Assembly (NCBI GenBank): GCA_965112735.1
Contig: OZ218954.1
Span: forward strand, 2,480,001-2,544,000
Length of the DNA stretch: 64,000 nt
Direction of reading: 5' to 3'
Source of the DNA: Phaeosaccion multiseriatum
Taxonomy: Eukaryota; Protista; Ochrophyta, other classes
Positions within the stretch are counted from its first letter, which is position 1; every line of letters starts with the position of its first letter. The position numbers and the translations under genes are program-made. The notes under the pieces were generated by a model. The model ran no database searches, was not told the DNA's origin, and saw only the letters and a program-made list of their open reading frames with translations. Of this stretch, positions 5,950-64,000 are shown piece after piece.

Positions 5950-6554
5950 ACGACCCCTGACGTGCTACCAACTCGGCCCCCATGCACGCCTAGCGGCCTA
6001 CGGCCTATTTGGGAAAATTGCCCGGCCTAGCGAGGGCCGTAGGCACTTGGGCCTATTTATATGCCGCCGCCTAGGCGGCCTAGGGCAGACGCCAGCCAAC
6101 TAGGTGGACGGTGGGAGTGCCCAGAGTGCAAAGAGTAGTCAGTTTCATTGCATGGGATTGGAGGTGAGGAGTAGACTTGGTTCGTGTTGTCTCTTCCGCC
6201 TCGCTGGCCCTGCGAGGAGTGCAGACCTACAGGTGTGCTGCTAACCACTGGCTGGGCGGCACCACGCACGCGCCCACGGTCACTGGGAGGCTGCCTAGAG
6301 GCGGGCTATATAGGCCGCCTAGGACTGAAAAGTGAGCAGCCTAGAGCGGCCGGAGGCCGCCGGCCTAGGCCTAGATCGGCCGAAGGCCGAGCGGCCTAGC
6401 GGCCTAGAGCAAAACCGCTAGGCGTGCATGGGGCCGATACCAACGCATTCTCGGTAGCACATGGCAGGTAGCACGCCGGCTGGCACCGGCGGTTAGCAAG
6501 TAGCACACCGGAAGAGGCGGGGGGAAGAGGAAGAGAAAGCACTTCAGGGGTCGA
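5950..6554. mobile_element. MITE family A hosting a nested family-B MITE
   Basis: ACGACCCCTGACGTGCTAC at 5950; AGCACTTCAGGGGTCGA ending 6554; GTAGCAC repeats in the right arm. Confidence 0.75.
5973..6437. mobile_element. MITE family B, inverted relative to 346-775
   Basis: TIRs TCGGCCCCCATGCACGCC / GGCGTGCATGGGGCCGA; perfect 7-bp TSD TACCAAC at 5966-5972 and 6438-6444. Confidence 0.9.
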
Positions 6555-6588
6555 CGACCAGCACCCTAAGTTGGAGGAAAGACGATGG

Positions 6589-6619
<31 letters not shown>

Positions 6620-6671
6620 TCACAGACCAAACGCGTTGGTTCTTCAACAGGGAGGGAGGACGCCCTTGTAG

Positions 6672-7827
6672 ATGCAGGTTCTCTCCCTTCTGTGGCTGCT
6701 CCTGCTTGCTCTGCGTGTGCGGGCAAGTAAAAATGGAGGCACATCCCCTGGGACGTTTGGTTTGTTTCATAGAAGGAGGGCTGGGGAGGCGGGGAAAGGA
6801 GTCGCGTGTTGGCACATGACGGGGCGTCTGTCCAATCCCTACACGGGGGAAATCATTGCTCGCGTGGAGGGGGTGGAGCTGTGCCGAAGTCTGGGATGCG
6901 GCGTGGGATCGGGGTGTGCAGAGGGGAAGTGGGCGGGAAAGCTCCGGGCTGCAGACGCAGTCAAGACTGGAGGTGCTGCGGAAGACGGAGAAGCTGCGGT
7001 AATAGGGTTTGCATCAGCCATTAGTCACAAGTTCTTCGTTTTCCTGAACCCCACGACTGGGAAGGCTTTGGAGTGGTTAAAGCTCAGCTCTGTGAGCAAA
7101 CGCAAACCCGTGGCTCCTTTTTCGGCCTCTGGACAGGTAAGCCCTCGAAGAAACGTCTTGTTGCGCGCGACAACCTATTGATTTGTTCTCTCTTGCATTT
7201 GTTGGGGCGGGGCGAAGATTGTGTCTCACGCCTTGCACTCGAGCGGAGCCATGACTGCGTATAGCGAGAGTCGCCAGAGTGAGGTCGCAAGTTCAACCAC
7301 ATTGAACACGGACTCTGTTCGTCAAACTACAAGCGCGGGGCCGATGTCCAGCCTTGTTTCGAAGTTCAAGCCGAGCCGGAGGGTGTTTACGCTGGACTTT
7401 TTCGTCAAGAGCGCCAGGTTGCAGAAGGAGGAGGGCGACTTCAGCGCGGCGGCCAAGAGAGATTCCCAACAAAAGAGGAAGCGGACGAAATGGTACGTGA
7501 GCCAGTGAGCCAGCCGAACCTCCTCCTCCTCCCCTTCCAATCATCATCCTCCTCCTCCTCTTCTTCTTCTTCTTCTTCTTCTTCTTCTTCTTCTTCTTCT
7601 TCTTCTTCCTCCTCCTCCTCCTCCTCCTCCTTTCGCTCTTCCAATCATTATCCTTCTCTCCTCCTCCCCTCCTTCCCCTCCACCTCCTTCTCCTCCTCCT
7701 CTTCCTCTTCTCCTCCGCTTTTGGTCCCTGCCCTGCCACTGCAGTCCGCTCATCGGTCTCTTCCCTCTTCACCCTTGTCCTCGTCTATCCGATGTCGTTC
7801 GTTTGTCGTTCCGTCTCTCCTCTCTCT

Positions 7828-7873
<46 letters not shown>

Positions 7874-8265
7874 CTATGGTATTGGCATTGTCATGGTCGT
7901 CGGCCTCTGCTTCCCCCCCCTCCTCTGCTTCCAGGCTTGCGTTCGGCCCTTCCGCTCCTCCAGACTATGGGTGTAAAGAGAGCTACAGCTACGTTGATGA
8001 CACCTTGATGACGTACTCGCGGTACGGGGAGTGTCCCGCCTGGTATGGGCCTGGTAAGATGTGTTCGCTAGACTTGACAGGTCGTCGCGTTGAGTCGTTC
8101 GACGGACTCCCGGATCACTTGCGCGCCATGATTGCGCAAGTCGTTCCAACATTCTCTGACCTGGCAGAGTCAGTGGAAGCTTTTAGGGCGCAAGGGGCGG
8201 AGGCACTGCAGATACTGTTCTCTCCTCCAAGGGAGGCTTGGTGGAAGATTTGGAAACTGCCCTAA
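6672..8265 (+). CDS. hypothetical protein with N-terminal signal peptide (3 exons)
   Basis: Hydrophobic N-terminus MQVLSLLWLLLLALRVRA; ORF pieces 6672-7181, 7221-7508 and 7792-8265 bounded by plausible GT/AG sites. Confidence 0.6.
7518..7930. repeat. intronic (CTT)n/(CCT)n/(CT)n pyrimidine microsatellites
   Basis: Directly visible runs. Confidence 0.9.
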
Positions 8266-8743
8266 TTTCCCCGCATGTTCTCGGGAAGAATCACGCGGAA
8301 GGTGAGGAAGCTTCGTTATGTGCCCGCGAAAGGTCTCTCGCCTCATTGGCCCACCACCCACCTGTCCTCCCCTCAATCGAGAAAGGCACCTCCATGTGAT
8401 ACTCTCTGCACCAGTGCCACCTCCGGGGCATATCAGCTGAGACAAGACGAGCTTCCCCAAGCTCTATGCTCCGAAACTGGGTCGAGCAGGCACGGGAGTG
8501 TGTATGTGTGTATGTTCGGAGCCATCATCGACGGGGTACAGGCCGTTCAGAAGCCGCAACGGCGACCACGATACCTGGCATAGCTGAGCAGTGTCCTCGC
8601 TCCCTCTCCAAACCATTGTCAACGGACAAAGCCAGCCATGCACGCCGGCTCCTGCCTACGCCACCTGCTCTGGTCGAGCTTGCCTTCTCCAACACGCTGG
8701 GCACATACTATCCTAAAAGTTGTAATGTATTTACACTTATCTA

Positions 8744-11700
8744 CTATCTTCCTTTCTCCTCATCGTCACTAAGTAAGACCTTTGTGATGTCCTTTTCTAT
8801 TGTTCGGCTCCTGTCTTGGAGCGCGTAAATCTTGTTGCGGAGAGGAACGATCTTGGAGTACATAAACTTGAGCTTGCAGTACAGGCGGGCCTCGCTGGGT
8901 TCCCACTTGTTTTCAATCTTTCGCTGCATGGTGAGCGGATAATCGTGCTCCAGCTGATCTGCAAGATCCCGGAGCGGAATGCGGCAGCACCCAATCCTTT
9001 TCGGGGCGGGTGACCGGACTGTAATGTCGAATACCACTTCAGCGTCTTGTGTCCGGACTGGAGCCATGACGAAAACTTGATTGAACTCCATGGCAGCGCC
9101 TTCGTCCCTCTTTCCCTTAATGCCTGCTAAAGAAGCGCCACCACCCGCAACCCCGACTCCTCTCCGTCTTGCGCCGTGGGCAGGCCGAGAAGCTTGTGGA
9201 GCCGGACCGGGTGGTACTTTGTCGCCCTGCTTGGTGCAGCGCAAGGACATAATAACACTCGTCGCGCTGGGATCCTCTTGCAGGCCCTCGAGGCGGATAA
9301 GCTTGATATTCAGGCACCCCAAGGGAAGGCCGTGCTTTGTCTCGCCAATTTGCGTTTGGTCGTTGAACGTCTCATTCTGGTAGGCTGCTTGCAATTGCTC
9401 CTTTGCCACTTTCAGAGCACGCGATACCTCCCGTAGCTCTGCGCGCAATTTGCTCACTGCTGCTGATGTCTCCTTTCGATATACTCGCTTCTGCTTGCTC
9501 ACAAACTTCAGTCCGTCGATATCCAAGTTGCCTTGATTGTCGCCCCCCCCAGCCCCCTCTCCCACGTTTCTCTCTCTGTCGTCGTCTCGGACGAAGCCGT
9601 GCTTGTGCTTCTGCACGATAAAACGGTGGCGTTCGATCACCGTACGAAGCCAGTCTGGCTCGTCACTTACGCAAAGGTGCAGTATGACCTTCAGCCCAAG
9701 CAGGGCATGTTCGAGGATGAGCCAGGTCAGAAACTTGGTTTCCAGACCCTTGTCCATCAACGTCCCGCTCGTGAAGCAAATAATGGCAGTATTGCTGAAC
9801 ACAGAGAGGTAGCCCATCGCCTCGGACAAATTGCTCCACATGCCCTATCAAGTGTGGCAAAGAACACGGGAAGGACACGGTCGCAATTACAAGTGCATCC
9901 TCTTCGTTGGGGGGAAGGGAAAATGGACGCCTGGAACTCCCATCAATCAGTCCACAGACACCGAAAACGACACCCCCTGACTACTTACCACGTCCTCTGC
10001 TTGCTCCGGGTATGGCCTGCGCAGCAAGCTCACAAGCTTGAAGCTGTCCACACGAATCTGCAACAGAATTTCTAGCATGGCCAGAAACACCACAGCCGGA
10101 AAACCTGCCACAAACATGGTCACATATCCGTACTGGAGCACGATGGCGGCATAGTCGTCAAAGGTCCCCTCGTAAGGGGGCTTGATGAGCTCGGACTCAA
10201 ACGCCTCCTCCTCCATAGCGACGCCTTGCTCCTCAGTGAGCCCGCTGCTAGCATCCTTCTCCTTCTCTTCCTGGCGTTCCTTCTCCTTCGCCGTCGCTTT
10301 CCAGGATGCCAAGGCATACGGGTGCCCCAGTTCCACGGCCGTCATGAGGAAGCGAACAATGAAGATGCTGAGGAGCAGTTCTCGCAGCTCATGGACACAG
10401 CTAGGTGAGCAGCCGTAGAGGGAGCCTTTGATGAAGCAATTGTAGAACAAAGCCGCGTAGTTGTTGAACATTTGAAACAAAAAAGTCTTGAAGATGAGGT
10501 TGTCCTCGTAAGAAGTCTCCGTCTGGTAATTCTCCAGCTCGTTGAGGTGGCGAACGCCGTGGGAATAAAACCAGCTCAGGACCTGAATTTGCACACTTGA
10601 CAGAACGCTATAATACAACGCACAGCAACAGGGGCGAGGTGGGTTTGGGGTATGTTGGAGGCATTTTATTTTGAGGGAAACGATGGCAACAAGGGCAAAA
10701 CTAAATCACCGCCTACCTTCCTGCCGTGCTTCCCCAGCTGTAGCCCTTCACGTCTTCTAGATAGTACTCCAACCATTCGACGAACTGGACAGCACCACAG
10801 AGCGCCACGATAAAAGTGACGATGAAGAAGAGACCAAGAGCTTGCCGGACCTATGCATGTGTTGGGGGGGCGAGGGGGGGGGGGACATGGAAAATGAGAA
10901 CAAATGTAAAACGTACCACTTCCTCTTGCGTTCATTCTCTCTCGCCATACCTGTCGCTTTTCGTCTGGGAAGAATGTCTCGTAAGTGTTTGTTACCGGGC
11001 TACGCCGCCTGCCTCCGTCGGGGGCATCTTTGTCTCCTCGGAAGGAAGGTCTGTCTTTCTCTACCTCCTCAAAGCCCACCGTACCCCACTTGACGGCCAC
11101 AACCTTCTCCTCTCGCTGCCACAGCTCCTTGTAAATGGTGTTCCACACAATAATCATAACAACCACTGCCACCTGCACAGGGTCCCAGCCGACCTCGTGA
11201 AAAGTCAAGCCGTTACTCCAAAAGTAAATCTCCGAGCCGATGCACAGCAGCGAAGGCACGATGAGTGCGTAACCATAGAAACCCAGCCAAGCAAAGTAGA
11301 ACGCTAGCTTCTCGCCAAAATAGTCGCGAACATCCTCGAGAGGCTGGCTGAAAGCGCGCAGGTACCACGACACGGCGACGCCCTCGTCCATCTCGCGCAT
11401 GCTGACCATGGGAGCACCCAAGCGGTCGGCTTCTTCTCTCCAGAAGAACACCCATCGCTTTTGTAGAACCTGTGGGCAACAAGGCACATAATTTACTCTG
11501 TCATGCTCCCGCACCTTTTGTATGGGACCGGACCGGACAAAGCTCGGTCAGCACTAACCTCTCTCGTAATCTTGTCTCCCCGATTGGCGTCGTGCAGGGC
11601 TGTGACGGACAGTACGACGCCCTTCTCTTGTAGAACTCCGAGGTCAAAGTACGAATCTATTATAGCTTTGGTAAGGATGAGGCGATCCTTGGCTCGAAAT

Positions 11701-52400: not shown

Positions 52401-53109
52401 GGTGGAGTGTGCTGCCTGTGGTACTCTGAACCCCACGGCGGCGGCAGCAAGTAGGACGGGAGGAGGTGATAAGGCTGCAGCAGTGCTCTTCGGCGGTAGC
52501 AGCAGCAGCAGCGGCATCGGTGGCCAGAGCTCACTCGCCGCTGCTGGTGGCGACTCGTGTATTGGGTCGGGAGGGTTCAGTTTTGGGGCGAGCTCGGGGG
52601 GCAATACGACGTTCTCCTCCTCTCCTAGTGGCGGCAGCTCGGCAGGTGTGACAGTCAAGGACAGCCAGGCGAGCGGCTCTTGTGCCACATCGACGGGCGG
52701 AATCGCGCCTGGCGGATTCATGTTTGGTATCGGTGCTGTGGCATCAAGTGAGCAAGGCAGGGTGAAGGACAAGTCGGAGGGAGAGGGCAACAGAGAGGAG
52801 GAGGAGCAGGTGGAGGTGGTGGTGGAGGAGGATGAGGAGGAGGAGGAGGAGGAGGAGGAGGAGGAGGAGGAGGAGGAGGCTGTCTTGGGCGCGGACGGAT
52901 ACGAATACCCCGAGAGTGACGAAGATGAAGACATGGCGCTGGAGAAGGAGAAGGCGAGGCGCGCATTTGACAGGTGTGGTGGGTCTGATGCGTCGGGGCT
53001 TGGTGAGGATAGATGGCCGGCCTTGTTCAAAGATCTTGGGACGACTTACGGCAAGGAGGAGCACGGACAAAAGATGCAGGCACTCGCGAACGGGACTGGT
53101 TCAGTTTAG
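43494..53109 (+). CDS. cyclophilin-type PPIase fused to nine RanBP2-type zinc finger/FG/acidic repeats (multi-exon; final exon ~44420-53109)
   Basis: [39 protein letters not shown]|[23 protein letters not shown]; repeats carry [16 protein letters not shown]. Confidence 0.88.
44950..53099 (+). repeat. coding tandem repeat: 8 full units (927, 918, 927, 903, 927, 903, 930, 930 bp) plus 1 truncated unit
   Basis: Unit spacing read from equivalent ORF starts (45101, 46028, 46946, 47873, 48776, 49703, 50606, 51536, 52466); length differences lie in the (GAG)n tract. Confidence 0.95.
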
Positions 53110-53264
53110 TGCATGGGTTGCACTGATTATGCACCTTGACTTGGTGTATATTCATCCAAAAATACTCGCCAACACTCGCTTCGCATAATCCAAACTGGGA
53201 GCCTATGTCAATAATACACTATTTATCCTTCGACTCCAGCCTCCGAGAACGGAATATCTTTCGT

Positions 53265-54207
53265 GCAAGTGTTATTCACGATCGTGCAGTGGCCGCTGCG
53301 TACAATACCCGATCAATATGTGCCTCGTTCACGCTGCTTGTGCCCCGCCAATGCCCGCCTCCGCCCAGTCAAGAGCGCGCTGCTTCAGCAGCGAAGCCAG
53401 ATTGGGCGTTTTAATGCCGGCCAGGGCTTTCTTTGTGCCTCTCGATCGTGGCAAGCGATGAGTCAGTATAGGCTCATTCCTGATCGTTCAGTGAACGCTG
53501 CGTCCACGGCCTGACCAGCAAATGCTTCACGCTACTTTCACACCGCAAATGCCCGCCTCCCCCCAGCCAAGGGCCAGATTGCGCGTTTTGAGGCCACCCA
53601 AGGCCTTGGTCGTGCCTCTCAAGGCCAACTATTGCGTCAGGAGAGTCATTTGTGCTCGTGCAGTGACCGCTGCGTACTCGGCCCGACCAGCAAATGCCTG
53701 ATTTCACAATTTCTGGGTACCCATTGAGAGGCCTCGCTCCTCCTCATCCAGTCGTCGTCAATGTTGGGGGATAAGCCTTTTCACTAAGAGTGCAGTCCTG
53801 AGAGGGACTCACCTCGGGGCACACACAATGCTTTTGCCCCGCAAATGCCCACCTCCGCCTATCCAAGGGCCAGATTGAGCATTATGAGGCCGGCCAAGGC
53901 CTTGGTCGGGCCCCAATTGCGTCAGTAGCGTCATTTCTGATCGTGCAGTGACCGCTGCGGGCACGGCCAGGCCAGCCAACGCCTCATTCACGCTCCTTGT
54001 GCCCCGCAACTGCCCGCCTCCGCCCAGCCAAGAGCCAGATTGGGCGTTTTGAGGCCGGCCAAGGCCTTGGTCGTGCCTCTCGGGTCCAGAGATTGTGTCA
54101 GTAGGGTCATTTGTGATCGTGCAGTTACCGCTGCGTACACGGCACTACCAGCAAATGGCTGATTCACGCTGTTTTTGCCCCGCAAATGCCCACCTCCGCC
54201 TATCCAA
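53265..54207 (-). repeat. ~5 diverged monomers related to the 177-bp satellite, in inverted orientation
   Basis: TTGTGCCCCGCAA.TGC and GCCAGATTGGGC match the reverse complement of the satellite's GCATTTGCGGGGCACAA and GCCCAATCTGGC; spacing ~175-200 bp. Confidence 0.75.
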
Positions 54208-54909
54208 CACAGGTGACAGGTGGCCCTCTCACCACAGGCAAATGTGTTCTCACTTGAGAGACGAAGACCCTCTTGCTCTCAAATGAGAGCGCCCCAAAAA
54301 AGAGAGGGTTTGGTCTTGAGAAGGTGGTGTCGCTGTGGGCTGGTGGAAAAGTGAATAAGATCGGTGCCTGAGTCAACCCTGACGGGATACGACAAATTCC
54401 GTGGCTTGAAATATCCTCGAGGGTCTCAACTCATAGCGTCTCCAGAGTATCGTGGGCTCTCAATTGAGACACCTGCGAGATGAGAGTACAGTGGGTCTTC
54501 AATTGAGAGCAGGGCTTGGTGTAAAGAGCGTATCACAACGACGAAGACATTTTTGGGAGGCGCTTGCTTGACTCTTCCGCAGCATCAGCTGCACGCATAT
54601 CAACCACTCTCAAAGGCTAAGAGCCTCCGGCAGGCTGCAGGAGCACATAGATCCCGCTGATCCCCACTGATGCATGTACTCGTGCTTACCCGGGAGAGAG
54701 CGCAAGCCGGAGATTTTGCATTGCCCACCAACTATGGAGAGCCAGGCAAGTTTGAAGAACCCCCACCACAACTGGCGACTAGCCAGTGTATGAACAACAT
54801 AAACCATTTCTTTCCCCCCCTTTTTTTTTATAGTTGTTTTTTGTGTACTGGCTTCCCTACAATGTAATGGCCCAGAAGTTGCGAGTGAACTGCAAAAATC
54901 ACATCCACA

Positions 54910-56245
54910 ATGCCCGCGAACTCTCCCGGTTATTTACAACTGTGTAGACTTCTGGGTGACACAGTCGAGCTTATACACAACGGTTCTGACGAAACATCAG
55001 AGCCAGGAGACATTATTATGGAGCTTGCAGAGGTAGAAACTCTTCATGACAAGAATCCTGGGTTCTCTTTGCCCTTTGGAGAGGAGCTATCCAGCTCAGG
55101 ACAAGTTGTGGTGGGAGGCATACTTGAGACAGGTGCCACGTATCGAGGTTCTCTCTTTCCCCTCCAAGTCAAGAGGATACTTGTTTTATTGTGGAGGATG
55201 ACTTGGTGCGCATTTTGACCATGGACAACATCCAGTACATCTCTCATTATATAGTGTTGTTTGGTCGACGGTGGATGTATTTGAAGAGAGAACGATGCGC
55301 TTTTACATCGCCAATGCGGACCATCAGGGTGTGGCACTGGACGACGAGGAAGAGATGGACATGCTCAAGCAGGATATCAAGGAGCAGTATTCTCTCCGTG
55401 TGATGGAGAAGGATGAAGTTGAGTGGCGACCTTGCGACAGTCGAGTGGGTATTGACAAAGAAGGTGCAATCTACTTGGAGATTCAGAGGACACAGTTTTG
55501 TCACTGTTGTGTCATCGAGGAGCTCACGGACATGGAGCGAGGCGAGCCCTTTGTGGTCAAAGATTTGTTACAGAGGCGAAAGACGTGCTTTACTACGCAA
55601 CCCTTCTTACAGTCCAATGCGATCTCCCCTTCGTCACCCTCTCCGAAGAAGGGTATCAAGTCTGTTGTTCGCAGCTTCGTCAAAGGGGAACCCAAAATCC
55701 GCTTTCGTCGCAAAGGTCGAAATCAATCGAATGTCAGAGACAATTGTGTGTTTGTTGCCAATTTCTCTCTCCAGGAGATCAACGCTGTGTTGGAGGGTGT
55801 GGGGAAGGGGGCACTTGGAGGATTATGGAATCAGAGCCCTTGGTACCCAATCGAGGTTTTGTGTGTATTTGCGAAAAGGGACTACGTCTACGAGGAGGCG
55901 AGCTCGGCTCGGGCTGGTGAACTGGAGCTGGGTGCAGATAGAGCGAGGATGGCAGCTAATCAAGAGCGTGCCAGAAGCTTTGTATGGGATGCCAATGCGC
56001 AATTTGAGGGCCGAGAACTTCGACCAAAGCGAGACGATGGACTGATCTCTGGTACATCCTTTGACTTCAACACGAACACAGCTACGATACGGTACTTCTT
56101 ATGGACACCCGATCACAAATCTGAGGGGAAAATGTGGACGTGGGGGTGCAGTGGTGACAAGGTTGGAAATTCTTTGTCAATGGGGAAAGTTGTCATCTTC
56201 AATACAACATACATGACATCCATGAAGCGAGTGGACCACTTCTGA
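54910..56245 (+). other. orphan ORF (324 aa, 55271-56245) with overlapping upstream ORF pieces in other frames; possible decayed element gene
   Basis: Protein-like composition; no motif recognised; adjacent ORFs 54910-55218 and 55191-55403 suggest frameshifts. Confidence 0.45.
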
Positions 56246-57545
56246 AGAGACATTTAAAAAAAAAACGTGGGACCATGACTCTCTCTACGGCGGAGAGACG
56301 ATGTCACCGTCCCAGGAGGAGAGAGAGAAGGAGGAAAGGAGAAAGAAGAGGAGGAGGACGAGTTGAGGTGAGTGGGTGGATATGCAGCAGCGAAGCCACG
56401 TACTTTGTCGCACATGTACCTTACATTACACTTTCTTCTTCCTATACCATGCCGCAGGTCAAGCATCACTAGCAGGACAAGGCACACGACCACCCGCCGT
56501 GTTTGTATGTTGCACAAAGAGGGTGGGTTAGGGCGATATGGGGGGAAGGGGGGGCAGTGGGGTTGGATGGGATGGGGTGGTGGGGTTAGCGACACACATG
56601 TCATGAACACGCGCGTACGCATGATGTTCGTATGTACATGCATGTCTTATGCATATAGTGTATGACATATGAGGGTGATGGGCGGAGGGGACGCACAAGT
56701 GCACGTGATATACATCAGAGAGGGGGTGCACTGGCGGCTGGGTGGGGGGTGCACATATGATGGGGGCGGAGCGGGGACACGGCAAGGACAGGGCAGTCAG
56801 AGTAGACTATAGACTATCATGTAGAGAAGAGTGGGTGTAGACATGGGAGACACGCATTGAAATACTTGCTTATACCACCTTCTCGAAGAAAAAACTCTAG
56901 GCTAGCTAGACGCGAGCACCTGGCTGCTAGCACGTCAGGCCCAGGCTCTCAAACTTCTACTAGATACGTGTGCGTAGCGCAAGCTCTTGCAACCGTTTGC
57001 ATTGGGGGCACCTCTTGTGTTTGCGACAAGTAGCATGACACAAGTAAGCACACGGCATCTTCACCCTCACAAGAGAAGCAGTCGGGCCCTACTGCGATCC
57101 TTGCTTTCCTGCACCATCAGTCTCTACTCTCCTCCCTGCTTGTACACGCTCCCGTACCTGCTCTCTTATCTCCTTCAATCACGGTAGGGTGGCGAGTACA
57201 GCAGGGCTTCTCCTCTTCTGAGCTCGAGCAGCAGAGAACACTGCTTACCATCTGCTGCCATACATATTTCTATCCTAAAAACCCCTCGGGGTCCACACAC
57301 GCGCCCACGCACCACACCCTACCCCTCAGCTCTCAATACCGTGCTTATCCGTCGACTCCATTGCACTCTGCGAGAACAGAACTTCCGTGGCTCAGCTGCA
57401 GACGCAGCGAAACCTTCCTTTTGAGACCAACCTACGTGCAGACAGTAGGAGGCTCTCAATTGAAACCCAAGGCGGCTCTTAGTAAGGCTCTCAGATGAGA
57501 ACTAGGCCCTCAGTTGAGCTCTAAAGGACCACCTGTCCACCTGTG

Positions 57546-60500
57546 CAGTGGGGCGTTGAATGGGTCAAGAGGCCCAATCTGGCCGCTGTTCCGAAGCACC
57601 CAGTTGCGTGGCACAAGAAAACAGCCAAACGAACCGTCGGTGGGCCACTAAATGCCCACGCAGAGCATTGGATCAGCACGGCTGGCCTACACAAGACACT
57701 GCATTGCCGCAACAGCGCCCAGTGGGACATTAAATGGGCTCAACAGGCCCAATCTGGCCCCTGGTTAGGCCCAAAGCAATGCGGGGCACACACAGCCTAA
57801 ATGACGGGTTGGCGTGTCATACCATGCCCGCGCAGAGCATCGTATCAGCATGACTGGCCTATCCGACACACTGCATCGCCACAACAGCGCCCAGTGGGGT
57901 GACGAATACGCTCAACAGGCCCAATCTGGCCCCTGGTTGGGCCCAAAGCAAGCATTTGCGGGGCACAAACAGCCTAAATGACGGGTTGGCGTGTCATACC
58001 ATGCCCGCGCAGAGCATCGGATCATCACGACTGGCCTATCCGACACACTGCATCGCCACAACAGCGCCCAGTGGGACCTTGAATGGGCTCAACAGGCCCA
58101 ATCTGGCCCCTGGTTGGGCCCAAAGCAAGCATTTGCGGGGCACAAACAGCCTAAATGACGGGTTAGCGTGTCTCAACATGCCCGCGCAGAGCATTGGATC
58201 ATCACGACTGACCTGTCCGACACACTGCATCGCCACAACAGCGCCCAGTGGGGTGACGAATGGGCTCAACAGGCCCAATCTGGCCCCTGGTTGGGCCCAA
58301 AGCAAGCATTTGCGGGGCACAAACAGCCTAAATGACGGGTTGGCGTGTCATACCATGCCCGCGCAGAGCATCGGATCATCACGACTGGCCTATCCGACAC
58401 ACTGCATCGCCACAACAGCGCCCAGTGGGACCTTGAATGGGCTCAACAGGCCCAATCTGGCCCCTGGTTGGGCCCAAAGCAAGCATTTGCGGGGCACAAA
58501 CAGCCTAAATGACGGGTTAGTGTGTCATACCATGCTTGCGCAGAGCATCGGATCAGCACGACTGGCCTATCCGACACACTGCATCGCCACAACAGCGCCC
58601 ACTGGGACGTCGAATGGGCTCAACAGGCCCAATCTGGCCCCTGGTTGGGCCCAAAGCAAGCATTTGCGGGGCACAAACAGCCTAAATGACGGGTTGGCGT
58701 GTCATACCATGCCCGCGCAGAGCATCGGATCATCACTACTGGCCTATCCGACACACTGCATCGCCACAACAGCGCCCAGTGGGACCTTGAATGGGCTCAA
58801 CAGGCCCAATCTGGCCCCTGGTTGGGCCCAAAGCAAGCATTTGCGGGGCACAAACAGCCTAAATGACGGGTTGGTGTGTCATACCATGCCCGCGCAGAGC
58901 ATCGTATCAGCACGACTGGCCTATCCGACACACTGCATCGCCACAACAGCGCCCAGTGGGGTGACGAATACGCTCAACAGGCCCAATCTGGCCCCTGGTT
59001 GGGCCCCAAGCAAGCATTTGCGGGGCACAAACAGCCTGAATGACGGTTTGGCGTGTCATACCATGCCCGCGCAGAGCATCGTATCAGCACGACTGGCCTA
59101 TCCGACACACTGCATCGCCACAACAGCGCCCACTGGGTCGTCGAATGGGCTCAACAGGCCCAATCTGGCCCCTGGTTGGGCCCAAAGCAAGCATTTGCGG
59201 GGCACAAACAGCCTAAATGACGGGTTGGCGTGTCTCAACATGCCCGCGCAGAGCATCGGATCATCACGACTGGCCTATCCGACACACTGCATCGCCACAA
59301 CAGCGCCCAGTGGGACCTTGAATGGGCTCAACAGGCCCAATCTGGCCCCTGGTTGGGCCCAAAGCAAGCATTTGCGGGGCACAAACAGCCTAAATGACGG
59401 GTTGGCGTGTCTCAACATGCCCGCGCAGAGCATCGGATCATCACGACTGGCCTATCCGACACACTGCATCGCCACAACAGCGCCCAGTGGGACATTGAAT
59501 GGGCTCAACAGGCCCAATCTGGCCCCTGGTTGGGCCCAAAGCAAGCATTTGCGGGGCACAAACAGCCTAAATGACGGGTTGGTGTGTCATACCATGCTTG
59601 CGCAGAGCATTGGATCATCACGACTGGCCTATCCGACACACTGCATCGCCACAACAGCGCCCAGTGGGACCTTGAATGGGCTCAACAGGCCCAATCTGGC
59701 CCCTGGTTGGGCCCAAAGCAAGCATTTGCGGGGCACAAACAGCCTAAATGACGGGTTGGCGTGTCATACCATGCCCGCGCAGAGCATCGGATCATCACGA
59801 CTGGCCTATCCGACACACTGCATCGCCACAACAGCGCCCAGTGGGACATTGAATGGGCTCAACAGGCCCAATCTGGCCCCTGGTTGGGCCCAAAGCAAGC
59901 ATTTGCGGGGCACAAACAGCCTAAATGACGGGTTGGTGTGTCATACCATGCTTGCGCAGAGCATCGGATCATCACGACTGGCCTATCCGACACACTGCAT
60001 CGCCACAACAGCGCCCACTGGGACCTTTAATGGGCTCAACAGGCCCAATCTGGCCCCTGGTTGGGCCCAAAGCAAGCATTTGCGGGGCACAAACAGCCTA
60101 AATGACGGGTTAGTGTGTCATACCATGCCTGCGCAGAGCATCGGATCATCACGACTGGCCTATCCGACACACTGCATCGCCACAACAGCGCCCAGTGGGA
60201 CCTTGAATGGGCTCAACAGGCCCAATCTGGCCCCTGGTTGGGCCCAAAGCAAGCATTTGCGGGGCACAAACAGCCTAAATGACGGGTTGGTGTGTCATAC
60301 CATGCCCGCGCAGAGCATCGGATCATCACGACTGGCCTATCCGACACACTGCATCGCCACAACAGCGCCCAGTGGGGCCTTGAATGGGCTCAACAGGCCC
60401 AATCTGGCCCCTGGTTGGGCCCAAAGCAAGCATTTGCGGGGCACAAACAGCCTAAATGACGGGTTGGCGTGTCTCAACATGCCCGCGCAGAGCATCGGAT

Positions 60501-63500
60501 CATCACGACTGGCCTATCCGACACACTGCATCGCCACAACAGCGCCCAGTGGGACATTGAATGGGCTCAACAGGCCCAATCTGGCCCCTGGTTGGGCCCA
60601 AAGCAAGCATTTGCGGGGCACAAACAGCCTAAATGACGGGTTGGTGTGTCATACCATGCCCGCGCAGAGCATCGGATCATCACGACTGGCCTATCCGACA
60701 CACTGCATCGCCACAACAGCGCCCAGTGGGACCTTGAATGGGCTCAACAGGCCCAATCTGGCCCCTGGTTGGGCCCAAAGCAAGCATTTGCGGGGCACAA
60801 ACAGCCTAAATGACGGGTTGGCGTGTCTCAACATGCCCGCGCAGAGCATCGGATCATCACGACTGGCCTATCCGACACACTGCATCGCCACAACAGCGCC
60901 CAGTGGGACCTTGAATGGGCTCAACAGGCCCAATCTGGCCCCTGGTTGGGCCCAAAGCAAGCATTTGCGGGGCACAAACAGCCTAAATGACGGGTTGGTG
61001 TGTCATACCATGCCCGCGCAGAGCATCGGATCATCACGACTGGCCTATCCGACACACTGCATCGCCACAACAGCGCCCAGTGGGACCTTGAATGGGCTCA
61101 ACAGGCCCAATCTGGCCCCTGGTTGGGCCCAAAGCAAGCATTTGCGGGGCACAAACAGCCTAAATGACGGGTTGGTGTGTCATACCATGCCCGCGCAGAG
61201 CATCGTATCAGCACGACTGGCCTATCCGACACACTGCATCGCCACAACAGCGCCCAGTGGGGTGACGAGTACGCTCAACAGGCCCAATCTGGCCCCTGGT
61301 TGGGCCCCAAGCAAGCATTTGCGGGGCACAAACAGCCTGAATGACGGTTTGGCGTGTCATACCATGCCCGCGCAGAGCATCGTATCAGCACGACTGGCCT
61401 ATCCGACACACTGCATCGCCACAACAGCGCCCACTGGGTCGTCGAATGGGCTCAACAGGCCCAATCTGGCCCCTGGTTGGGCCCAAAGCAAGCATTTGCG
61501 GGGCACAAACAGCCTAAATGACGGGTTGGTGTGTCATACCATGCCCGCGCAGAGCATCGTATCAGCACGACTGGCCTATCCGACACACTGCATCGCCACA
61601 ACAGCGCCCACTGGGTCGTCGAATGGGCTCAACAGGCCCAATCTGGCCCCTGGTTGGGCCCAAAGCAAGCATTTGCGGGGCACAAACAGCCTAAATGACG
61701 GGTTGGCGTGTCTCAACATGCCCGCGCAGAGCATCGGATCATCACGACTGGCCTATCCGACACACTGCATCGCCACAACAGCGACCAGTGGGACCTTGAA
61801 TGCGCTCAACAGGCCCAATCTGGCCCCTGGTTGGGCCCAAAGCAAGCATTTGCGGGGCACAAACAGCCTAAATGACGGGTTGGCGTGTCTCAACATGCCC
61901 GCGCAGAGCATCGGATCATCACGACTGGCCTATCCGACACACTGCATCGCCACAACAGCGCCCAGTGGGACCTTGAATGGGCTCAACAGGCCCAATCTGG
62001 CCCCTGGTTGGGCCCAAAGCAAGCATTTGCGGGGCACAAACAGCCTAAATGACGGGTTGGTGTGTCATACCATGCTTGCGCAGAGCATTGGATCATCACG
62101 ACTGGCCTATCCGACACACTGCATCGCCACAACAGCGCCCACTGGGACCTTGAATGGGCTCAACAGGCCCAATCTGGCCCCTGGTTGGGCCCAAAGCAAG
62201 CATTTGCGGGGCACAAACAGCCTAAATGACGGGTTGGCGTGTCATACCATGCCCGCGCAGAGCATCGGATCATCACGACTGGCCTATCCGACACACTGCA
62301 TCGCCACAACAGCGCCCAGTGGGACATTGAATGGGCTCAACAGGCCCAATCTGGCCCCTGGTTGGGCCCAAAGCAAGCATTTGCGGGGCACAAACAGCCT
62401 AAATGACGGGTTGGTGTGTCATACCATGCTTGCGCAGAGCATCGGATCATCACGACTGGCCTATCCGACACACTGCATCGCCACAACAGCGCCCACTGGG
62501 ACCTTTAATGGGCTCAACAGGCCCAATCTGGCCCCTGGTTGGGCCCAAAGCAAGCATTTGCGGGGCACAAACAGCCTAAATGACGGGTTAGTGTGTCATA
62601 CCATGCCTGCGCAGAGCATCGGATCATCACGACTGGCCTATCCGACACACTGCATCGCCACAACAGCGCCCAGTGGGACCTTGAATGGGCTCAACAGGCC
62701 CAATCTGGCCCCTGGTTGGGCCCAAAGCAAGCATTTGCGGGGCACAAACAGCCTAAATGACGGGTTGGTGTGTCATACCATGCCCGCGCAGAGCATCGGA
62801 TCATCACGACTGGCCTATCCGACACACTGCATCGCCACAACAGCGCCCAGTGGGACCTTGAATGGGCTCAACAGGCCCAATCTGGCCCCTGGTTGGGCCC
62901 AAAGCAAGCATTTGCGGGGCACAAACAGCCTAAATGACGGGTTGGCGTGTCTCAACATGCCCGCGCAGAGCATCGGATCATCACGACTGGCCTATCCGAC
63001 ACACTGCATCGCCACAACAGCGCCCAGTGGGACATTGAATGGGCTCAACAGGCCCAATCTGGCCCCTGGTTGGGCCCAAAGCAAGCATTTGCGGGGCACA
63101 AACAGCCTAAATGACGGGTTGGTGTGTCATACCATGCCCGCGCAGAGCATCGGATCATCACGACTGGCCTATCCGACACACTGCATCGCCACAACAGCGC
63201 CCACTGGGACCTTTAATGGGCTCAACAGGCCCAATCTGGCCCCTGGTTGGGCCCAAAGCAAGCATTTGAGGGGCACAAACAGCCTAAATGACGGGTTAGT
63301 GTGTCATACCATGCCTGCGCAGAGCATCGGATCATCACGACTGGCCTATCCGACACACTGCATCGCCACAACAGCGCCCAGTGGGACCTTGAATGGGCTC
63401 AACAGGCCCAATCTGGCCCCTGGTTGGGCCCAAAGCAAGCATTTGCGGGGCACAAACAGCCTAAATGACGGGTTGGCGTGTCATACCATGCCCGCGCAGA

Positions 63501-64000
63501 GCATCGGATCATCACTACTGGCCTATCCGACACACTGCATCGCCACAACAGCGCCCAGTGGGACCTTGAATGGGCTCAACAGGCCCAATCTGGCCCCTGG
63601 TTGGGCCCAAAGCAAGCATTTGCGGGGCACAAACAGCCTAAATGACGGGTTGGTGTGTCATACCATGCCCGCGCAGAGCATCGTATCAGCACGACTGGCC
63701 TATCCGACACACTGTATCGCCACAACAGCGCCCAGTGGGGTGACGAATACGCTCAACAGGCCCAATCTGGCCCCTGGTTGGGCCCCAAGCAAGCATTTGC
63801 GGGGCACAAACAGCCTGAATGACGGTTTGGCGTGTCATACCATGCCCGCGCAGAGCATCGTATCAGCACGACTGGCCTATCCGACACACTGCATCGCCAC
63901 AACAGCGCCCACTGGGTCGTCGAATGGGCTCAACAGGCCCAATCTGGCCCCTGGTTGGGCCCAAAGCAAGCATTTGCGGGGCACAAACAGCCTAAATGAC
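57546..64000 (+). repeat. 177-bp satellite array, ~36 copies, runs off the window
   Basis: Equivalent positions 177 bp apart (58024/58201, 60844/61021); first monomer diverged, the rest highly similar. Confidence 0.97.

Follow-up and report, generated by a model that had tools for sequence, protein, structure and literature searches.

How did a 177-bp satellite come to lie, in opposite orientations, on both sides of a core that carries an open reading frame? The window analysed here is a stretch of 64,000 nucleotides from the ochrophyte Phaeosaccion multiseriatum (contig OZ218954.1, positions 2,480,001 to 2,544,000), and a sequence-only reading of its right-hand end proposed a large foldback-like element whose right arm had run away into a satellite and whose core encoded the element protein. 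Our analysis shows a largely ordinary locus: the core is probably a decayed copy of a terminal inverted repeat (TIR) element at the edge of a candidate-centromeric satellite, with inverted relic monomers outside it, and the satellite did not grow from the element.

The right satellite array begins at 57546/57547 and occupies the remainder of the window (57546–64000, + strand). Repeat detection gives a period of 177 with 95% matches. The array is 33 kb long, lies entirely in the + orientation with one 4.1-kb interruption and ends at ∼ 90708 (extended window coordinates). It is homogeneous (95–98% across the 33 kb); divergence is higher in its first three to four monomers. Blocks of the 177-bp satellite were found on at least 10 contigs (C2, C3, C5, C6, C8, C9, C10, C11, C15 and C16; the window belongs to the C5 chromosome), and the locus lies at the arm-side border of the C5 block of this genome-wide satellite. 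One large homogenized block of a nucleosome-sized tandem unit per chromosome would be expected of a centromeric satellite; besides the 33-kb block on C5, blocks were seen on nine further contigs, and we regard the repeat as a candidate, probably centromeric.

On the left, relic satellite (53271–54207, − strand) lies between the stop codon of a long upstream ORF (53109) and the core. A multi-chromosome satellite profile identifies six partial, decayed monomers of ∼ 176 bp, all on the minus strand (53271–53426, 53449–53605, 53623–53704, 53829–53901, 53916–54066 and 54091–54220; E 1e-8 to 7e-31), confirming the inverted, diverged monomers that the sequence-only reading had described. That they do align significantly to the satellite was also seen with a single C5 monomer as query, which matches the left stretch down to E 2.5e-13; 200 shuffles of the stretch gave no match to this query. 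The relic monomers are interrupted by a piece of a dispersed repeat (∼ 115 bp, 53710–53824, + strand) flanked at both ends by CACAA; its 91–92% matches at C6 and C10 adjoin copies of a ∼ 530-bp repeat that is also present in the core (see below). Mutual identity among the left monomers is 70–89%. They are 51–73% identical to the consensus of the right array and 50–73% identical to the consensuses of other chromosomes (five variants), and are thus equally distant from both; the two arms are therefore not copies of one another. We interpret the six monomers instead as a satellite remnant of much greater age that was left stranded in inverted orientation.

The core measures 3,338 bp (54208–57545). 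Its left TIR, CACAGGTGACAGGTGG (54208–54223, + strand), matches the reverse complement of 57529–57545 (CACAGGTGGACAGGTGG) at 16/17 positions with one indel; the right TIR at 57529–57545 is CCACCTGTCCACCTGTG. As a gapped pattern, the TIR occurs five times in the 67-Mb genome, three times at ends of this element family, compared with a single occurrence for the reversed control. CTCA-NN-TGAG palindromes cluster just inside the termini, as the sequence-only reading had noted: three on the left (54249, 54278, 54459) and two on the right (57490, 57509), and the 64-kb window contains no further exact CTCANNTGAG site. The inward motif that the two arms were said to share is genuine, but it marks the end of the core, with the monomers beyond it. 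Rfam gave no match in 53000–58500.

Comparison with the rest of the genome divides the core into conserved and foreign parts. The left part (54208–54730, + strand) is 92.6% identical to a copy on C16, 86–89% to C3a and 87% to C4 (partial). The first piece of the right part (56271–56879, + strand) is 89% identical to C15 and 83–89% to C4 and C8; a second piece (57410–57545, + strand) carries the right-hand palindromes and the right TIR. Between these two pieces lies a ∼ 530-bp dispersed repeat (56880–57409, + strand) with at least 40 scored copies (86–91%, on 12 contigs), mostly within or adjoining satellite blocks. Empty sites at C15 and C11, where 56879 is immediately followed by 57410, show that this repeat is nested in the core.

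Including the window copy, the family has eight copies. Left (L) ends are found at C16, C3:332559 and C3:3468685, where the left terminus is also present, and right (R) ends at C4, C11, C8 and C15. C3a and C4 overlap by ∼ 1.5 kb at 83–85%, so that L and R parts belong to a single element type. A canonical interior of ∼ 1.65 kb is mutually homologous in C3a, C4, C16 and C15 and is thus the ancestral interior of the family; it contains no long ORF. A TIR search allowing up to two mismatches revealed neither further family members nor a transposase partner in this genome. TIR matches at C5:3124760, C1:4073326 and C6:771106 (1-mismatch) show no family homology and were dismissed as chance. In our reading the core is a single decayed member of a non-autonomous TIR family with few copies, a gene-less type of transposon that would move by cut-and-paste. 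The near-perfect terminal repeats and the identical end points at eight loci whose flanks are unrelated, being either satellite of differing phase and orientation or unique DNA, are traits of class II TIR transposons; an autonomous transposase partner, a further trait of this class, was not found among the TIR matches or in the canonical interior. Against our preferred explanation it counts that the window copy alone has both termini, no target-site duplication is readable, and the transposase partner is missing.

CACTA/En-Spm elements, and the wider CMC group, have CAC...GTG termini, clusters of subterminal repeats and a 2–4-bp target-site duplication, and depend on a CMC-type DDE transposase. 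The family resembles them in its CAC-starting TIRs (CACAGG..CCTGTG), its clustered subterminal palindromes (5/5 sites), its rearranged non-autonomous copies and the foreign sequence in its interior. However, its terminus reads CACAGG and not CACTA, no 2–4-bp duplication could be recognized, and the genome yielded no transposase partner, so that membership of the group, and the superfamily generally, is putative.

Could the ‘element’ never have been mobile and represent instead a dispersed host gene or a segmental duplicate, with ends that coincide by chance? The canonical interior does show exon-like features, namely an acidic stretch ending AG/GTGAGT and a short signal-peptide-like ORF conserved between C3a and C4. 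We nevertheless consider this highly improbable, since homology stops at exactly the same nucleotides in eight contexts, the 17-nt termini form a near-perfect inverted repeat and the outer flanks are non-homologous between loci. The non-homologous flanks also led us to reject segmental duplication of the whole arm, element and array edge. In the outer flanks of C8, C11, C15 and C16, ten ORFs were compared with Pfam and none had a match.

The other copies also bear on the origin of the satellite. Five of the eight adjoin satellite arrays, and the predicted association of the core with monomers elsewhere holds to the extent that element parts lie beside monomers on four other chromosomes; orientation and phase vary, though, and C3a, C3b and C4 have no monomers. 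The termini adjoin non-satellite DNA at C4 and at two loci on C3. Relative to the element ends, the satellite is arranged as (−)L..R(+) at C5, (+)L..(−) at C16, R(+) at C8 and C15, and R(−) at C11, and the phase of the monomer at the junction differs between copies. A large foldback-type element, with inverted arms of 177-bp subrepeats of which the right one was amplified into the satellite, would account for a core flanked by inverted monomers, and the L end at C16 likewise lies between inverted monomers. It also has a precedent in Tetris, an FB-like element of Drosophila virilis, in which tandem repeats inside its terminal inverted repeats, on the inner side of a common terminal domain, gave rise to satellite arrays (PMC4079207). 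The present family is similar to Tetris in being a non-autonomous inverted-repeat element tied to tandem repeats of ∼ 200 bp and heterochromatin-like repeat blocks, with rearranged forms common. In contrast to Tetris, the monomers are outside the 17-nt termini (54208/57545) rather than inside inverted arms, they vary in orientation and phase, and the blocks are chromosome-wide and independent of the element. Nor do the arms share outer termini: no inverted match exists between 53100–53270 and the far array border. Arms that resemble each other no more than they resemble the satellites of other chromosomes, opposite polarity at C16 and C11, three copies free of satellite and large satellite blocks on at least 10 contigs all speak against a runaway foldback arm, as does the absence of the core ORF from all other copies (see below). 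We therefore give this origin hardly any credence; what stands of it is that a mobile element bounded by inverted repeats encloses an orphan ORF.

In place of the canonical interior, the window copy contains a unique segment (54731–56270, + strand) that does not resemble the other family copies and has no copy elsewhere in the genome, at the DNA level or in a six-frame protein search, which returned the ORF itself only. The ORF had been placed at 54910–56245 as one open frame; this region comprises two frames, 54910–55218 and 55202–56245. They can be joined in frame by a probable GT..AG intron, either 55133–55235 or 55140–55254, a frameshift being the alternative. Exon 1 (54910–55132 or 54910–55139) would then be followed by exon 2, which would begin at 55236 or 55255 and close with the stop codon at 56243–56245. 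GC content at the three codon positions (0.52/0.40/0.55) is coding-like. With the exons as separate queries, no homologue was detected in 1.84e9 representative proteins (exhaustive HMMER), nor was there a match in Pfam, NCBIfam (E up to 1), a PDB sequence search, a word-based protein search or the ESM Atlas; the ORF is as unrecognised as the sequence-only reading had it. AlphaFold2 run without an alignment gave a pLDDT of 30.

The ORF is a passenger and not a shared element protein, because it is absent from all other copies. One might still regard the window copy as the sole surviving autonomous copy, the orphan ORF as a novel transposase and the other copies as deletion or replacement derivatives. 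It alone has both termini, and the long, coding-like ORF fills the interior almost exactly. However, the ORF is single-copy in the genome, its searches yielded no homologue and no transposase or nuclease domain, C3a, C4, C16 and C15 share a different interior, and the window copy is itself disrupted by the nested repeat and has rearranged flanks. This makes an autonomous copy very unlikely. A retrocopy origin of the segment, considered for its A10 run (56255–56264), was rejected because the genome contains no parental gene for it, and is further weakened by a similar A-run plus CGTGG motif within the canonical element at C16.

In Pack-type gene capture, known from Pack-MULE and Pack-CACTA elements, a non-autonomous TIR element carries a foreign segment the size of a gene inside its conserved ends. 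The window copy likewise has a foreign, gene-sized segment within conserved TIR element ends. It differs from these elements in that this genome holds no parental gene and no homologue was found.

We propose that a copy of the element inserted into the satellite, and that it later received the nested ∼ 530-bp centromere-associated repeat. Its ∼ 1.65-kb interior would have been exchanged for the unique 1.5-kb segment with its orphan, probably two-exon, ORF. The right array may since have been expanded and homogenized by ordinary turnover, presumably unequal exchange and conversion. The window copy is flanked by inverted satellite with no clear target-site duplication (..TATCCAA / CAGTGGGG..), and this, together with the orientation switch and the differing junction phases, points to a rearrangement in which a breakpoint fell at the element, possibly recombination between inverted copies inside the satellite or aberrant transposition. 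An inversion through two inverted copies of the ∼ 530-bp repeat (56880–57409 and a fragment at the far border) was rejected, since undoing it breaks the clean empty-site relation with C15 and C11.

Whether the family shapes array edges, and is not merely hosted there, is a separate matter. By one-ended, reversed-ends or sister-chromatid transposition, or by recombination of inverted copies, the element itself might flip the satellite. Both loci at which an intact L end lies beside satellite, C5 and C16, sit exactly at an orientation switch; the edge at C16 has the same layout, with main array, element, two inverted monomers and non-satellite DNA. The left junction at C16 and the right junction at C5 interrupt the monomer at positions that agree to within 2 nt, and the window copy has no target-site duplication. 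The R side is towards the main array in 5/5 satellite-linked copies (1/16 by chance; small numbers). But there are only two such switch loci, with opposite polarity; the far border of the C5 array has no reciprocal breakpoint copy; and the age of the left monomers, far greater than that of the array, prevents the event from being dated to the element. Strand switches are, moreover, common at the edges of centromeric arrays of other organisms that have no such element. On balance we consider active flipping unlikely. A yet bolder version, in which the family is a satellite-edge specialist that flips arrays and sets their boundaries, with the window copy as its last autonomous member and a transposase without detectable relatives, seems to us highly improbable. 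As an observation in its own right, the consistent facing of the R side and the inverted outer monomers at 2/2 loci with an intact L end beside satellite (1/4 by chance) count against a purely passive old insertion, small as these numbers are.

The preferred reading of a decayed element at a satellite edge has familiar counterparts. At the edges of human alpha satellite and Arabidopsis CEN180 arrays, a homogeneous core array gives way to older, diverged monomers, with strand switches and surviving peripheral transposons. The C5 edge likewise combines a homogeneous core, old edge monomers, a strand switch and an edge transposon; it differs in that the host is a stramenopile alga and the residents are a TIR family and the ∼ 530-bp repeat. 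An attractive but wrong origin story is removed: the candidate centromere satellite of this alga does not derive from the arm of a foldback transposon. The orphan ORF in the element, a putative coding sequence that is restricted to its lineage and lies at the edge of a candidate centromere, is a minor oddity. The edges of the satellite blocks host an old TIR element family together with the ∼ 530-bp repeat, and inverted relic monomers are left stranded outside the homogenized array, resembling animal and plant centromeres.

The window (C5:2480001-2544000) belongs to a 67-Mb genome assembled in 22 contigs. An upstream long ORF ends at 53109, and the features discussed here run from there to the window end. 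A 177-bp tandem array was identified from 57652 to the window end (Tandem Repeats Finder, 95% matches). When followed past the window with eight additional 10-kb pieces, it extended from 57546 to ~90708 (window numbering continued downstream), on the + strand throughout, with a single 4.1-kb interruption at ~64999-69113. Pieces 82–97% identical to this insertion also break satellite on C15 (fetched piece L026, 7944-8417), C8 (L031, C8rc 6340-6770) and C16 (L027, C16rc 2119-2809 and 8034-8954). Satellite blocks occur on at least ten contigs as chromosome-specific variants (consensus identities 60–85%).

To the left of the array lies a 3,338-bp core (54208-57545). Its left terminal motif, CACAGGTGACAGGTGG (54208-54223), recurs in reverse complement at 57529-57545, a pattern with just five occurrences genome-wide; the inward-ending motif of the sequence-only reading is thus real, as are the palindromes inward of it, all five exact CTCANNTGAG sites of the 64-kb window being located just inside the two core ends. 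The left 523 bp (54208-54730) are found again at C16:539160 (93%), C3:332559 (C3a, 86–89%) and C3:3468685 (C3b), where each left part begins (C/T)ACAGGTGGACAGGT. Copies of the right part (56271-56879 plus 57410-57545) were found at C15, C11, C8 and C4, those at C4 and C11 ending in ...GGGCCACCTGTCCACCTGTG and those at C8 and C15 having a truncated terminus. C3a, which has the left end, and C4, which has the right, overlap by ~1.5 kb (83–85%), which makes the two parts pieces of a single ~3-kb element type. Flanks are unlike at every family locus, either satellite of varying phase and orientation or, at C3a, C3b and C4, non-satellite DNA. A TIR-bounded mobile element is recognisable from the fixed termini, from inverted repeats of 17 nt that match almost perfectly and from clusters of subterminal motifs. 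Matching termini, which the sequence-only reading suggested looking for, recur at other loci; the target-site duplication is not readable because only the window copy has kept both ends. CAC...GTG termini and subterminal repeats are CACTA/CMC-like features; the core family has both, a resemblance and not an assignment.

No long ORF was found in the canonical interior (the middle common to the other copies), and a relaxed TIR search of the genome gave no additional members and no autonomous partner. The canonical interior holds a short signal-peptide-like ORF, which is conserved in both C3a and C4, and an exon-like acidic stretch (L028 3560-3700, L026 5780-5950, aligned to window 56271-56366) that ends at a consensus splice donor, TTGAG/GTGAGT. 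The family may have arisen from an old gene fragment or may contain one. The C4 copy has a ~700-bp (CA)n/(CACACG)n-type microsatellite expansion just inside its right end (L028 3900-4630, C4:4088900-4089630).

Six partial minus-strand monomers were detected left of the core (53271-54220, E 1e-8 to 7e-31), both by BLAST and with a multi-chromosome satellite profile, confirming that monomers here are inverted relative to the right array. A single C5 monomer as query gave E 2.5e-13 against this stretch, and 200 shuffles of it yielded zero matches. In profile alignments the six are 51–73% identical to the right-array consensus, 50–73% to the C6, C8, C11, C15 and C16 consensuses, and 70–89% among themselves. 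They represent an old, separate remnant and no mirror of the right array. A ~115-bp repeat piece (53710-53824), with CACAA at either side, breaks into these relic monomers. Two copies on C10 (L007 1017-1124 and 2035-2142), 1018 bp apart, form direct repeats around a copy of a ~530-bp repeat, which hints at a small terminal-repeat element; another copy lies on C6 (L004 1170-1256).

The sequence-only reading proposed a foldback-like element whose right arm had amplified into the satellite. It is right that an orphan ORF sits within an inverted-repeat element, but the monomers are located outside the element's termini, in contrast to Tetris, whose terminal inverted repeats contain the tandem repeats (PMC4079207). 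The outermost part of the left arm and the far array border showed no inverted match to each other. Satellite at the right end is (+) on C5, C8 and C15 and (−) on C11; on C16 it is (+) at the left end, with the main array (−) on the other side. The monomer is cut at differing positions at the element/satellite junctions. With the left/right divergence and the blocks on at least ten contigs, these observations led us to reject an arm origin.

Within the core, 56880-57409 is a dispersed ~530-bp repeat with sharp ends and at least 40 scored copies (86–91%) on 12 contigs (L034, C3:1714-8289, among the loci), almost every one in or beside satellite blocks. On C15 (L005-L010, C15:1996461-2013648) it recurs every 2.1 kb, alternating with ~nine monomers as a 2.1-kb higher-order unit. 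Its copies showed no clear target-site duplication, TIR or poly-A. The C15 and C11 element copies join the equivalent of 56879 directly to that of 57410; these clean empty sites indicate that the repeat inserted later in the window copy. The far array border is abrupt and begins with an inverted fragment of the repeat, 81–84% identical (90709-90904, also given as 90713-90904, in continued numbering; L021, C5:2570709-2570904), so that inverted copies bracket the 33-kb array. Near the C3 contig end, oppositely oriented copies flank a 936-aa open frame (L034, C3:5144-7951 (+)) with RT, RNase H, integrase zinc-binding and integrase core domains, a Ty3/gypsy-type pol.

The unrecognised ORF described at 54910-56245 is present, but as two frames, 54910-55218 and 55202-56245. 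Either of two candidate GT..AG introns (55133-55235 or 55140-55254) would join them in frame; alternatively, a frameshift separates them. Codon-position GC (0.52/0.40/0.55) is coding-like, with GC3 below that of neighbouring long ORFs. With the separate exons as the only queries, nothing matched in Pfam or NCBIfam, among PDB sequences, by a word-based protein search, in the ESM Atlas or when 1.84 billion representative proteins were scanned exhaustively with HMMER; a single-sequence AlphaFold model was uninformative (pLDDT 30). The surrounding segment, 54731-56270, has no other DNA copy in the genome and no protein-level paralogue by six-frame search; it also does not resemble the interiors of other family copies, those of C3a, C4, C16 and C15 being mutually homologous. 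The ORF is thus a true orphan in one copy. Its suggested role as the element protein finds no support, since it is absent from the other copies, whose interiors differ; it is cargo of a single copy and not a family-wide protein.

The expected association of the core with monomers elsewhere holds in part: five of eight family copies adjoin satellite, a strong enrichment, but orientation varies and C3a, C3b and C4 have non-satellite flanks. The right side faces the main array in all five satellite-adjoining copies. C5 and C16 share the order main array, element, a few inverted monomers, non-satellite DNA, but relative to the element the polarity is reversed between them. The monomer is interrupted at one position, to within 2 nt, at both the C16 left junction (..CAGCGCCAA/T-ACAGGTGG) and the C5 right one (CACCTGTG/CAGTGGGG). 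These layouts are compatible with rearrangements that broke in or at copies of the element lying within satellite, for which recombination between inverted element copies or aberrant transposition would be candidate routes; with so few cases this is not distinguishable from chance.

Neither a "runaway arm" as source of the satellite nor an "element protein" role for the ORF is supported. The most plausible interpretation is that this locus marks one edge of a candidate centromeric array, where an old non-autonomous TIR element sits together with nested repeats and stranded relic monomers. All of these components are of already known kinds, of which the locus is a further example.
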